A stretch of 64,000 bases of DNA from the IMG/VR virus record IMGVR_UViG_3300030108_006260, positions 1 to 64,000 of that record. One strand, 5' to 3'. Shown here piece after piece: positions 7,765 through 47,596 of the stretch. The position numbers were made by a program, and so were the translations under genes. Under the pieces are notes generated by a model. It saw nothing but the letters and a program-made list of their open reading frames with translations. It did not search any database and was not told the origin of the DNA. How positions within the stretch are numbered: position 1 is the stretch's first letter; the number at the start of each line of letters is the position of its first letter.

Positions 7765-8378
7765 TACTTTACTCCGTTAAATCTTACTTTTTCGTGCATC
7801 CAATGGGTGGAAGTCTGCACATGGTTTTTTCTTACGTATTTTGCTACAAGAGAAGAGAACTGATCAAAACTAAATGAAGAGGTAGGTCGAACTACGTACC
7901 CCTCCTTACCACTGATATCAATTTGGTCCAGCATGTCCTTACTAAAAGGACCTTGGTAGAGAACAGGGACAGGAGAAATATCCATCATGGACAGGTAGTC
8001 CAATGTGTCTGACCAAGACAGACACGTATTCGTTTCATCCCATACGGAGAACGCCAGGAATATATGGGGTAGCTCCGTGTACTCGATCGAGTGGACAGCC
8101 GTAAGATTCTCCCCGCAGACTCTCCACCCTGAGGGTATGTTTCCTTGAATACTTGAGTGGAATGCTTTGATCTTTGTCCTGGATTCGTGGGGCCTATAGT
8201 TCAATGAGCGGGCATGTATCCCATCGGAGTAAAGAGAAGTATTCTCCCCATCCATCTTTTCAGTAACAACTACTTCCCCCGAGTCTTCGAGAGGAGTCAG
8301 GTCCGAGAGGATCTTATCGTCGTTAGTAGCCCCAGGACTCCAAGGAAGATGATAGGTTCTAGGGTACTTGATCCACAT
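7764..8378 (-). CDS. RNA ligase family protein (ATP-dependent nucleotidyltransferase)
   Basis: KYPRTYHLPWSPG N-terminus, motif I TEKMDGEN, CGENL, EGYVVR. Confidence 0.85.
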   Translation of the reverse strand: MWIKYPRTYHLPWSPGATNDDKILSDLTPLEDSGEVVVTEKMDGENTSLYSDGIHARSLNYRPHESRTKIKAFHSSIQGNIPSGWRVCGENLTAVHSIEYTELPHIFLAFSVWDETNTCLSWSDTLDYLSMMDISPVPVLYQGPFSKDMLDQIDISGKEGYVVRPTSSFSFDQFSSLVAKYVRKNHVQTSTHWMHEKVRFNGVK

Positions 8379-45411: not shown

Positions 45412-45451
45412 ATTGTTGTGGATATCCTTTCTGATAATAGATAATAGAATT

Positions 45452-45485
45452 AGAAACGGGGAAGCAGTCTCGCTTCCCCGTTTCT
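45452..45485 (-). terminator. intrinsic terminator closing the tRNA/ncRNA array
   Basis: 14-bp perfect stem agaaacggggaagc / gcttccccgtttct immediately after the last CCA. Confidence 0.75.
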
Positions 45486-45598
45486 GGACCCCTGCGCACG
45501 ATTCGAACGTGCAGCTCCCAGTAGATCAGTCTGGGCTCAGAACACTCAAAATACGCGCGTATCTATTGTGTTCCCTGTTTCCGTTACACCAGCAGGAG
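45485..45598 (-). ncRNA. tRNA-like RNA with expanded anticodon arm
   Basis: CTCCTGC/GCAGGGG acceptor + T + CCA; GCACG-TTCGAAT-CGTGC T arm; GAACAC/GTGTTC stem enclosing 22 nt including palindrome ATACGCGCGTAT; CCCAG/CTGGG variable arm. Confidence 0.75.
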
Positions 45599-45613
45599 AT
45601 TCTTTGTATTTGG

Positions 45614-45790
45614 TCAGAACATAGTCGGCTTTTTATTTCTAGCCTCATCTAGTTCTGTGGACCCCGAGCTGTCTGTGTACTCGATGATACTTCTATGTAC
45701 CTTTTCGTACCTAACGATCTTGATAAGTATATTGATACATACGGTACCAACAATACTTGCTAGTGTGACTTCAATGAGCCATTCGAGCAT
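45614..45790 (-). CDS. small membrane protein (58 aa) inside the RNA array
   Basis: MLEWLIEVTLASIVGTVCINILIKIVRYEK... read by hand. Confidence 0.55.
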   Translation of the reverse strand: MLEWLIEVTLASIVGTVCINILIKIVRYEKVHRSIIEYTDSSGSTELDEARNKKPTMF

Positions 45791-45820
45791 TATTTTTATA
45801 CCTTCAAAACCGAATCAAAT

Positions 45821-46057: not shown

Positions 46058-46196
46058 AAGAAACCGAGGTAACAATCTGTGTAACATTTATGTTCATTTT
46101 CAAGATGAATGACTTTACCATTTGTCTACATCAGCTGGTAGCTGAAGACAGGATTCGAACCTGCAATTGCGTGTAAGATTGTTTGTAAGGTTTCTT
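46058..46196 (-). ncRNA. Y-RNA-like RNA with circularly permuted tRNA (T arm, closed acceptor, D arm, TGA anticodon arm)
   Basis: Outer stems AAGAAACC/GGTTTCTT and AACAATCT/AGATTGTT; inside GCAGG-TTCGAAT-CCTGT, CTTCAGC-TACCA-GCTGATG, GAC-AAATGGTAAA-GTC, TTCAT-CTTGAAA-ATGAA. Confidence 0.8.
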
Positions 46197-46198
46197 CT

Positions 46199-46334
46199 TG
46201 GCGGAGTTGACTGGAATCGAACCAGATTTGCTTGTAAGAACTGCGAAGTAGTCACTAGGTGACTGAGTAGAAGTTCTGGGAAAAATATGCTTTCTCTAAA
46301 ATGAAAGTGGGGAACCAATCCCCTGTTCAACTCC
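46199..46334 (-). ncRNA. tRNA-like RNA carrying the conserved module in its variable arm
   Basis: GGAGTTGA/TCAACTCC-G-CCA acceptor; GGGGA/TCCCC D-like stem; AGAACT/AGTTCT + AGTCAC/GTGACT module; CTTACAAGCA; CTGG-TTCGATT-CCAG. Confidence 0.75.
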
Positions 46335-46380
46335 TAATTTTGGAAATTTTTACATCTTATCCATGATGGTAATTAATTGC

Positions 46381-46506
46381 CACTAACTGAGTTATAAATC
46401 TGATTTTGATTTGCAGCGCAGGATTTGAACCTGCTACCTTCTGAGTTTCGGTCAGATGCTCTACCAAATGAGCTAGATGCGTGTAAGATTTATTTGTTAG
46501 TTAGTG
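46381..46506 (-). ncRNA. Y-RNA-like RNA enclosing a degenerate tRNA-Phe-like body (loop CCGAAAC)
   Basis: Outer stems CACTAACT/AGTTAGTG and ATAAATCT/AGATTTAT; CTTACACGCA; D, anticodon and T arms present; weak acceptor and no CCA. Confidence 0.75.
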
Positions 46507-46509
46507 ACT

Positions 46510-46639
46510 CGGCGGGGTGTCCTGGAATCGAACCAGATTGCTTGTAAGGATTTGTGGTTGGCCTCGGATGAGGCGAGGGAAAATCCTGTGAAATATCATT
46601 TCCAAATAATGATCGGAGGGCCACCCTCCTATACACCCC
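46510..46639 (-). ncRNA. tRNA-like RNA carrying the conserved module in its variable arm (sister of 46199-46334)
   Basis: GGGGTGT/ACACCCC-G-CCG; GGAGGG/CCCTCC; AGGATTT/AAATCCT + GCCTC/GAGGC; CTTACAAGCA; identical T arm CTGG-TTCGATT-CCAG. Confidence 0.75.
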
Positions 46640-46681
46640 AGGAAGACCTACAAAGTAGGTCATAAACCTAGTATACGAGAT

Positions 46682-46785
46682 TAAAAGCTGAGTTTTTGAT
46701 GTACAATGTAGGAATCGAACCTACTACATTAAGGTTAATAGCCTTACGCTCTATCCAATGAGCTAATTGTGCGTGTAAGCTTTTA
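46682..46785 (-). ncRNA. Y-RNA-like RNA enclosing a tRNA body with ATT anticodon
   Basis: TAAAAGCT/AGCTTTTA outer stem; CTTACACGCA; GCTC/GAGC D arm; TAAGG-CTATTAA-CCTTA; GTAGG-TTCGATT-CCTAC; no CCA. Confidence 0.75.
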
Positions 46786-46807: not shown

Positions 46808-46835
46808 AGTTTAACACGCTCTCCGAAGTTGTCAA
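46808..46835 (-). promoter_or_regulatory. sigma70-type promoter driving the RNA array
   Basis: TTGACA, 16-nt spacer, extended -10 TGnTAAACT; T-tract upstream; array begins ~20 nt downstream. Confidence 0.75.
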
Positions 46836-47002: not shown

Positions 47003-47596
47003 TTAGTGAGACATAGCCCCGGCTGGATGAACAGTGTAACCTACCTTGACCCCGTCGTCAACAAATTTTTGAACAGAACGTGCAAGATAAGAAGAAGTGA
47101 TAGCGATAAAGGGGAGAAACTGCCCATCCTCGCAAGTAGCAGCGCCTTCCTGTGGTTCTGGATCGATAACAAAGTTCTCGCTCCAGACGATACGACCGAA
47201 ACTTCCTGCCCCGTCAAGGGCACCGTGAAGACAAGGAATCTCATCCTCACCTTCCTGGGGTCGACAGAAGTTCTGTACGACACTTCGTCCCTCCAGGTTA
47301 TCCAAGCAGTCTACAACAAGGTCAGCGTCGGACAAAAGCTCATAAACATTTTGGTCTGTCAACTTGTGGGGAACCACAGACAGCTTCGTACCAAAGACAA
47401 AGTTCATTGTCTGCTTTAGTCCCTGTACCTTACCTTTTCGTACGGAACCCTTAGAGTGAAACTGGGAGGCCACGTTCTTGGTCTCTACCTTGTCAAAATC
47501 AATAACGGTAAGATCGATGTCTAGGTTACGAATAAACTGAACAAGGTGAGATCCAAGGGCACCCACACCTACAACTACTACTTTCTTCTGAGACAT
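47003..47596 (-). CDS. E1-like ThiF/MoeB adenylating enzyme
   Basis: VVVVGVGALGS, VIDFDKVETKN, DLVVDCLDN; candidate catalytic Cys in GAATCEDG. Confidence 0.88.
   Translation of the reverse strand: MSQKKVVVVGVGALGSHLVQFIRNLDIDLTVIDFDKVETKNVASQFHSKGSVRKGKVQGLKQTMNFVFGTKLSVVPHKLTDQNVYELLSDADLVVDCLDNLEGRSVVQNFCRPQEGEDEIPCLHGALDGAGSFGRIVWSENFVIDPEPQEGAATCEDGQFLPFIAITSSYLARSVQKFVDDGVKVGYTVHPAGAMSH

Follow-up and report, generated by a model that had tools for sequence, protein, structure and literature searches.

A tRNA-like RNA gene with a closed, expanded anticodon arm at the end of a tRNA array in a marine huge phage

We analysed a 64,000-nucleotide (nt) stretch of DNA, hereafter the window, which forms positions 1-64,000 of the IMG/VR virus record IMGVR_UViG_3300030108_006260 (G000; 240,443 base pairs (bp), rated 62% complete), and focused on a 114-nt element on its minus strand at 45485-45598. 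The element keeps the body of a transfer RNA (tRNA) from the acceptor stem to an encoded CCA end, and 22 nt predicted to fold into a closed helix stand where the anticodon loop would be. Chance does not account for the tRNA body, and we regard the derivation of the element from a tRNA as secure. The explanation that we favour, granting it somewhat less than an even chance, is that the element specifies a tRNA-derived RNA that is processed like a tRNA and does not decode.

Structure of the element

The arms of the element were assigned by direct reading and by folding with RNAfold. Its parts are listed below, the whole element first and then from the 5' end of the RNA.

45485-45598, minus strand: whole element, a 114-nt tRNA-like RNA gene (exact ends called by ARAGORN with introns allowed; cloverleaf by RNAfold; also recovered by covariance model R2 and by a scan for T stem and acceptor)
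45592-45598, minus strand: 5' strand of the acceptor stem, CTCCTGC (positions 1-7), paired with 45489-45495 at probabilities of 0.87-1.0
45576-45589, minus strand: D arm, with a G10.G25 mismatch, 3 bp (UGU/ACA) and the loop AACGGAA (direct reading)
45568-45574, minus strand: 5' strand of the outer stem of the anticodon arm (G26, GAACA at 27-31, C32), paired with 45539-45545 at probabilities of 0.85-0.95
45546-45567, minus strand: 22-nt insert in place of the anticodon loop (RNAfold), with a 12-nt palindrome at 45551-45562
45539-45545, minus strand: 3' strand of the outer stem of the anticodon arm (G38, UGUUC at 39-43, U44), from folding and pair probabilities
45513-45538, minus strand: long variable region with a 5-bp CCCAG/CUGGG stem, a 9-nt loop and U48 at its end (pair probabilities 0.98-1.0)
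45496-45512, minus strand: T arm, GCACG-UUCGAAU-CGUGC (direct reading, RNAfold, T-stem/acceptor scan)
45485-45495, minus strand: 3' strand of the acceptor stem, GCAGGGG, with discriminator U73 and encoded CCA (45488-45485; direct reading)

The acceptor stem CUCCUGC/GCAGGGG comprises 7 bp, one of them a G.U pair, and is directly followed by U8 and G9. In the D stem, U11-G12-U13 face A22-C23-A24 in only three Watson-Crick pairs beside the G10.G25 mismatch, and this stem is weak in the thermodynamic ensemble (pair probability ~0.15, with all other arms at 0.85-1.0). The D loop supplies A14, A15, G18, G19 and A21, and the nucleotides of the U8-A14 contact are present. The variable region spans 27 nt, its terminal U48 being able to form a Levitt pair with A15, and both the G53-C61 pair and the T-loop TTCGAAT are canonical. 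None of the 33 modelled pairs is broken, and no universal tertiary nucleotide is missing.

The departure from a canonical tRNA lies in the anticodon arm. Here G26 stands opposite U44, and the stem formed by 27-31 (GAACA) and 39-43 (UGUUC) is in the correct register and is extended by a C32-G38 pair. The resulting stem (GAACAC/GTGTTC) encloses 22 nt, or 24 when C32 and G38 are counted, rather than a 7-nt loop with U33. Within this enclosure RNAfold predicts a 3x3 internal loop, a 6-bp helix (AGAUAC/GUAUUU) and a GCGC tetraloop, so that the entire anticodon limb, from its outer 7 bp to the tetraloop, becomes a closed helix of ~16 base-pair steps. The arms, the stems and the 22-nt enclosure had been outlined in an earlier note on this DNA, and that outline proved accurate to the base. 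Overall, the element has the 7-bp acceptor, the discriminator, the 5-bp T stem and the 7-nt T-loop (T54, Psi55, C56, R57, A58) of a canonical tRNA; what it lacks is an anticodon stem of 5 bp around a 7-nt loop that presents U33 and an anticodon.

The insert carries the perfect 12-nt palindrome ATACGCGCGTAT (45551-45562), which occurs once in the genome, as does the 22-nt insert sequence as a whole. In cofolding, the palindrome strongly favours a homodimer (-41.5 versus 2 x -11.7 kcal/mol). An origin of the palindrome in a repeat or mobile element was rejected, as the genome holds only one copy, and so was a restriction-site logic, as CGCGCG is no rarer than the general CpG deficit predicts.

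The set of features that might define the identity of the element, namely C1-G72, U73, a D loop of class I size and a long variable arm, matches none of the phage's tRNAs. The long-arm tRNAs of the phage carry A73 (Leu) or G73 (Ser), and U73 is found only in those for Gly, Cys, Thr and Gln(CUG). Derivation as a paralogue of the phage's own tRNAs was rejected for want of specific similarity; its Ser, Leu, Tyr or U73 tRNAs show no likeness to the element beyond generic tRNA features.

The tRNA body is not a chance match

With introns allowed, ARAGORN calls exactly 45485-45598 and labels it tRNA-Ser(UGA) with an intron. When the 240-kilobase (kb) genome was dinucleotide-shuffled 20 times (4.8 megabases (Mb) in all), the same program, given introns of 0-60 nt, made no call with an intron. 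An independent covariance model, R2, whose seven source sequences are unrelated phage tRNAs with long variable arms, matches 45485-45596, almost the whole element, at 21.7 bits (E ~8.5e-4). Scanning the genome for a perfect T stem combined with a perfect 7-bp acceptor recovered only four extra tRNA-like genes, the element among them.

Default ARAGORN made no call for the element and no transfer-messenger RNA (tmRNA) call. Rfam gave no match to it either, and on an isolated 201-nt stretch none appeared even at E up to 10, RF00005 included. Annotation pipelines either miss the element or, with introns allowed, assign it the unsupported label of an intron-bearing tRNA-Ser(UGA). A coding explanation was considered and rejected: two open reading frames (ORFs) overlap the element, one of 40 amino acids (aa) at 45526-45648 on the minus strand and one of 79 aa at 45413-45652 on the plus strand, and no public gene call lies there.

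Position in a transcription unit

All genes in the region, including the element, lie on the minus strand. Their order is a promoter-like site at 46808-46835, unusual tRNAs and tRNA-like genes, tRNA-Gly, tRNA-Met, a weak promoter-like site, a 58-aa ORF, the element and a terminator. The features nearest to the element are as follows.

45789-45818, minus strand: weak sigma-70-like promoter match (9 of 12 positions, by consensus match only), between tRNA-Met and the 58-aa ORF
45614-45790, minus strand: 58-aa ORF directly upstream of the element, with a hydrophobic N-terminus by eye and a gene call in public assemblies
45452-45485, minus strand: intrinsic-terminator-like hairpin of 15 pairs that starts at the A of CCA

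The 58-aa ORF, for which no protein family match was obtained, has its stop codon 15 nt before the element. The element is the last RNA gene of a promoter-to-terminator unit that it shares with tRNAs, and its placement in the earlier note, last in the array and abutting the terminator, agrees with this arrangement.

A putative tRNA-shaped RNA that does not decode

We suggest that the element would be transcribed as the last RNA of the tRNA/small-ORF unit, which would start at one or both of the promoter-like sites (46808-46835 and 45789-45818) and end at the terminator (45452-45485). Because the acceptor/T-arm minihelix and the elbow nucleotides are fully canonical, RNase P would be expected to cut at C1, and removal of the 3' trailer would stop at the encoded CCA, leaving a stable, L-shaped RNA of ~114 nt. 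Since its closed helix shows no codon-reading triplet, this RNA would not decode and would act as a natural 'tRNA scaffold' carrying a hairpin.

As to its use, our best guess is a tRNA mimic that would occupy proteins recognising the tRNA shape or the CCA end, possibly maturation or charging enzymes, or host toxins attacking the acceptor end. A decoy for anticodon nucleases, as proposed in the earlier note, is unlikely, because what such enzymes recognise is the anticodon loop, which this RNA does not display; a mimic or decoy for factors that read the elbow, the acceptor end or its CCA is possible.

Several features of the locus agree with a retained, non-decoding RNA. The insert prolongs the anticodon stem instead of breaking it, and a long decay is unlikely because all modelled pairs and universal tertiary nucleotides are intact. 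The element is dispensable for decoding, given that at least 36 standard tRNAs in the 240-kb record (ARAGORN) cover all 20 amino acids without it; an encoded CCA is found in 28 of 36 of these tRNAs. Furthermore, related huge phages have many non-canonical tRNA-like genes, and the covarying family described below (25 of 30 pairs) shows that phages of this group do convert tRNA scaffolds into other RNAs.

A broader proposal, which we consider rather improbable, would make the element a member of an undescribed class of arm-expanded tRNA-scaffold RNAs. Such RNAs might be masked 'pro-tRNAs', whose anticodon loop would stay hidden until a nuclease and ligase step exposes it, or mimics or dimerising RNAs that would counter tRNA-directed host defences. 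If this were true, other non-canonical tRNA-like genes of related and unrelated phages would represent the same phenomenon. The element alone is of moderate interest, which would grow if it were part of such a wider set. For tRNA genes in phages, codon supply and evasion of tRNA-cutting host nucleases are the usual explanations. A tRNA gene that keeps everything except decoding would indicate that the tRNA shape has a third use, either as a mimic or as a stable scaffold that processes itself.

Variation, relatives and expression

The sequence of the element is identical in five independently assembled places and in one further metagenome contig, and it is also identical in contigs with a slightly different neighbouring protein. 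In the cluster members P0021 and P0022, both the element and its flanks equal the reference. Among the four runs compared, using contigs and not raw reads, we detected no substitutions, indels or joints in the element. All sampled contigs carry the same sequence of the element.

We searched for relatives with sequences, patterns and models. Model R1, a model of the element itself, found no second copy in the element's own 240-kb genome and no homologue at loci of distant relatives. Three related huge-phage records (1 Mb) scanned whole with cmsearch held no homologue, the top match being an ordinary tRNA-Thr. The RNA-mode genome search overlooked a 31.8-bit match that cmsearch gave on the fetched locus, and the negatives for genomes G001-G004 are thus weak. 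An exact 24-mer spanning the T arm and acceptor has no occurrence in IMG/VR, and a pattern combining the palindrome with the T-loop hit 14 loci there, none of them related. Relatives were also approached through neighbouring genes. The downstream 145-aa protein has IMG/VR relatives at 29-42% identity, none with the element, and a wider protein search raised this to at most 59% identity over a third of the protein; a peptide-pattern scan of IMG/VR for rIIA yielded no relatives. The literature that we searched contained no paper on short inserts in the anticodon loops of phage tRNAs.

Patterns of the D loop and T-loop, applied to IMG/VR and JGI metagenomes, retrieved two analogues. The tRNA-like gene at L104/L105 is 122 nt long, with 56 nt inside a 4-bp stem. 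At L193 (7053-7210), a 98-nt tRNA-like RNA shares the D arm of the element, has U73 and bears a tetraloop hairpin where the anticodon arm would be. Its start lies 7 nt downstream of a consensus promoter (TTGACA-17-TATAAT), and a ribosome-binding site with an ATG comes after it, placing a tRNA-like element as the 5' leader of a messenger RNA (mRNA). Because the pattern forced 20 matching bases, we take L104/L105 and L193 as structural analogues at best, homology not being proven.

A number of these and other results weigh against the favoured explanation. Zero sequence variation in at least 24 contigs and 13 DNA runs means that there is no covariation and no selection signal. We found no RNA run with the element, and one metatranscriptome from a positive sample yielded nothing. 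None of the sequence, pattern and model searches gave a convincing homologue, and the best outside match, L193 at 40.1 bits, has a score inflated by the 20 identical bases that the pattern imposed. The D stem contains a G.G mismatch. The whole-molecule folding z-score is only -1.75, perfect 12-nt palindromes are present in the genome at chance frequency (60 seen, 58.7 expected), and, when the outer stem is kept fixed, an equal or better fold is reached by 16-20% of 22-nt inserts that are shuffled or random; the insert fold, unlike the tRNA body, is thus not significant by itself. The earlier note's 'palindrome-expanded' arm is therefore right in its perfect 12-nt palindrome and its expanded arm, and overstated in the significance given to the palindrome. 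Finally, we infer the transcription, processing and stability of the RNA and, above all, its mimic or decoy function, the last of these purely so.

Alternative explanations

A redundant, already unusual tRNA gene may have been disabled recently, when its anticodon loop gained a short insertion or underwent a local inverted duplication; its RNA may still be made and processed but would serve no function. This is an unlikely explanation, albeit one that carries real weight, and it is close to the pseudogene suggested in the earlier note, with which the identity of all copies found is compatible. That note had proposed looking for homologues that conserve the arms and vary the insert, and no convincing one emerged. 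A disabled gene would fit an orphan with no homologue in related phages, an insert whose structure is not statistically special, and a phage in which 20 of 20 amino acids are supplied without the element; early decay could explain the G10.G25 mismatch as well as the unusual identity features (C1-G72, U73), and with zero population diversity the event could be very recent. Against it stand the intact helices, universal core nucleotides and CCA, a stem that the insert extends and does not disrupt, and a genome with no intact parent copy. The locus is also unchanged in samples of several studies, though the flanking DNA is likewise unchanged. Distinctly unlikely, in our view, is a precursor tRNA from which a nuclease removes a short intervening sequence and a phage RNA ligase re-seals the ends to give a decoding tRNA. 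ARAGORN with introns models the element in this way, and deleting 17 nt gives a canonical loop with U33 and A37 (CUUUGAG or UUUUGAG, anticodon UUG), the ARAGORN register giving instead the loop UUUGAGU with anticodon UGA. Two Rnl2-type RNA ligase genes lie beside tRNA arrays, and a tRNA-Trp(CCA) copy in a related huge phage has a 16-nt hairpin just 5' of an intact anticodon loop. However, no register offers a bulge-helix-bulge, the internal loop being a symmetric 3x3 and not two 3-nt bulges offset by 4 bp, and the splice point of ARAGORN requires a stem register without nucleotide 26. Neither a splicing endonuclease (PF01974) nor RtcB (PF01139) had a match in the 240 kb, in which control families did match, a negative that is weak in a 62%-complete record. 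The host appears to be bacterial, and self-splicing would need a longer insert. Neither the Gln nor the Ser tRNA of the phage agrees with a long variable arm combined with U73, and the phage already supplies both UUG and UGA anticodons. The intron raised in the earlier note is accordingly distinctly unlikely, and U73 does not suit Ser, Leu or Tyr in this phage. A group I intron was rejected as well: the insert of 17-22 nt is far too short, a group I self-splicing core typically exceeding 200 nt, and Rfam gave no intron match.

The tRNA shape could also act in cis, as a processing or stability signal in the manner of 't-elements', recruiting RNase P or 3' enzymes to define the 3' end of the mRNA for the 58-aa ORF and freeing an RNA without a role. 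The t-elements of plant mitochondria are an established concept (PMC1920247). The element starts 15 nt past the ORF stop and ends at the terminator, and the possibly related L193 likewise occupies an mRNA-flanking position, with a promoter before it and a ribosome-binding site and ATG after it. Yet the ordinary tRNAs of the operon would already supply such cuts, and a signal of this kind would leave the closed anticodon limb and the long variable arm unexplained; we see only a slim chance for it. Hardly credible is the idea that the feature acts at the DNA level, its palindrome being a protein-binding or restriction-type site and its tRNA likeness incidental. The palindrome is perfect and unique in the genome, but palindromes of its length occur at the chance level given above, the surrounding tRNA body is highly non-random, and CGCGCG shows no special avoidance. 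Set beside these alternatives, a tRNA-derived, non-decoding RNA remains the explanation that we favour.

The source phage

The same phage is also present on a 340-kb contig and in marine metagenomes, including those of Tara, and we take its genome size as ~340 kb, that of a marine huge phage. It has no close relatives; the proteins neighbouring the element match only distant homologues, at 29-44% identity over most of their length. Its host appears bacterial, because the genome has sigma-70-like promoter matches, intrinsic-terminator-like hairpins and an rIIA gene, the last found in the 240-kb record. The Rnl2-type RNA ligase genes that adjoin tRNA arrays are located at 7833-8276 (minus strand) in the window and at 78099-78632 (minus strand) in G000. 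A 197-aa ThiF-family protein (Pfam) is encoded at 47003-47596 (minus strand) in the window, just upstream of the tRNA array, and its presence, together with that of the ligases beside the arrays, suggests that putative tRNA modification and repair functions are clustered there. No gene for Ro60 (TROVE) or for a CCA-adding enzyme was found in the 240 kb of the record.

The restriction-type palindromes CTCGAG, CTGCAG and GAGCTC have no site in the whole record, where base composition predicts ~50 of each; CCGCGG has a single site and CCCGGG two. This pattern amounts to strong avoidance of restriction sites and is a possible clue to the host.

Further non-canonical tRNA-like genes

The array that ends with the element also contains members of a second kind of RNA, which we term the 'CTTACA' family after the CTTACA module named in the earlier note, comprising conserved tRNA-like RNAs of 130-144 nt in four huge phages. 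Copies are located in the window at 46510-46639 and 46197-46334 (both on the minus strand), at L063:9146-10540 (five in tandem), at L076:4316-4868 and at L096:2449-2939. They are built from a 7-bp acceptor, a D-like hairpin, a 4-6-bp hairpin with a varying 7-8-nt loop, a long hairpin, a single-stranded YUACAAG and a T arm. RNAalifold on 10 sequences revealed compensatory changes in 25 of 30 pairs, and the family has no Rfam match. The motif CTTACA[AC]GCA occurs five times in the 240-kb genome, always within 46136-46780 of the window on the minus strand. Besides the family copies, it lies directly 5' of tRNA-Asn(AUU) at 46700-46772, directly 5' of a tRNA at 46410-46482 with the loop CCGAAAC (C33, anticodon GAA; reported by Rfam only), and within a fragment at 46136-46190 that consists of a T arm plus CCA. 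A role as a processing signal is possible. The element at 45485-45598 does not contain the motif, as the earlier note had observed, and membership of the element in the family was rejected on that ground.

A second tRNA-like gene with an enlarged anticodon loop is encoded in G000 at 76171-76248 (minus strand), between tRNA-Asp and tRNA-Ile. It is 78 nt long and has 16 nt enclosed by a 6-bp stem (CUAGUG/CACUAG), along with a reduced D region with GGUUCGA, A73 and CCA.

Other phage loci carry a tRNA-Ile(UAU) of 93-96 nt that combines a class I-type D arm with a long variable arm (L112, L116, L117, L127, L129, L132 and L140, and also L106, L121 and L138). The loop of its variable arm reads roughly (A/U)GAUU(A/G)G, and one 104-nt version has two hairpins in the variable region. 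A long variable arm normally marks tRNAs for Ser, Leu and Tyr, and the charging identity of these genes is thus notable. Membership of the element in this group was rejected, as R2 scores it below ordinary tRNAs. At L120:847-942, L123:10850-10945 and L135:586-681, an 8-nt anticodon loop UAAYCAAU accompanies a long variable arm, and ARAGORN reports four-base anticodons.

Contigs from different samples hold tRNA-like genes of ~120 nt (L109:77-195, L122:4843-4965, L131:4977-5099, L134:8841-8961 and L144:9625-9744), with a canonical acceptor, D arm and T arm and ~65 nt between; several share a CCTG-NAAA-GG hairpin followed by ACAGCA. ARAGORN called none of them, and the two scanned against Rfam, L131 and L134, had no match. 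In related huge phages, a tRNA with a ~35-nt hairpin inside its D loop is found at G005 143690-143796 and G007 145951-146056. A 233-nt RNA with tRNA-like ends and ACCA is located at G005 88557-88789 and G007 89359-89591, and a 131-nt RNA with the tmRNA-like ends GGGGCUG...UCCACCA at G006 369768-369898.

Comparison with known systems

The element resembles several known kinds of RNA in part. Intron-containing precursor tRNAs of archaea and eukaryotes likewise have extra nucleotides in the anticodon loop and a stem extended by pairing of the insert. In contrast to them, the element has no bulge-helix-bulge and no endonuclease gene and sits in a bacterial-host context, and its splice point would fall at 31/32 or 32/33 rather than at 37/38.

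The tRNA-like domain of tmRNA and YrlA are tRNA mimics in which, as in the element, a long helix replaces the anticodon limb. Assignment to tmRNA was rejected for lack of an ARAGORN tmRNA call and of an RF00023 match, and at 114 nt the element looks too short for a tag reading frame. The RNA ends of YrlA lie in the long helix, those of the element at the acceptor stem; with no TROVE gene in the record, assignment to YrlA or another bacterial Y RNA was rejected too. The 'CTTACA' family of the same array shares with the element the operon, the strand, the 7-bp acceptor stem, the T arm and an expanded middle. It differs in the invariant YUACAAG before the T arm, a variable domain of 60-75 nt and a 7-8-nt loop on the anticodon-like hairpin, all of which the element lacks.

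Ponchon and Dardel reportedly designed 'tRNA scaffold' RNAs by swapping the anticodon stem-loop for a payload hairpin. In these as in the element, an intact acceptor, T and D core would give processing and stability while the anticodon limb may be any closed helix. The engineered scaffolds are artificial, and the payload of the element is only 22 nt, with no recognisable aptamer or target.

The closest precedent is provided by the species 1 and 2 RNAs of phage T4 (rnaC and rnaD), which, like the element, are the last genes of a phage tRNA cluster and lie on the strand of the tRNAs. These stable RNAs are still described as being of unknown function (PMC9697503). A canonical T arm (CCGGG-UUCGAAU-CCCGG) lies by an acceptor-like stem in rnaC, and long hairpins take the place of the anticodon region. 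The acceptor stem of rnaC is imperfect and no CCA is encoded, whereas the element has a full cloverleaf with a D arm, a 27-nt variable arm and an encoded CCA. Searched against the T4 tRNA region, model R1 gave 14.6 bits on the 3' part of rnaC, below T4 tRNA-Arg and not indicative of homology, and for rnaD it gave no credible match, only a 3.7-bit fragment on the opposite strand (E 9). The element is best filed with phage-encoded tRNA-like stable RNAs, a loosely defined kind, for which huge marine phages with many such RNAs, some of them covarying, offer a comparative handle beyond T4 alone.

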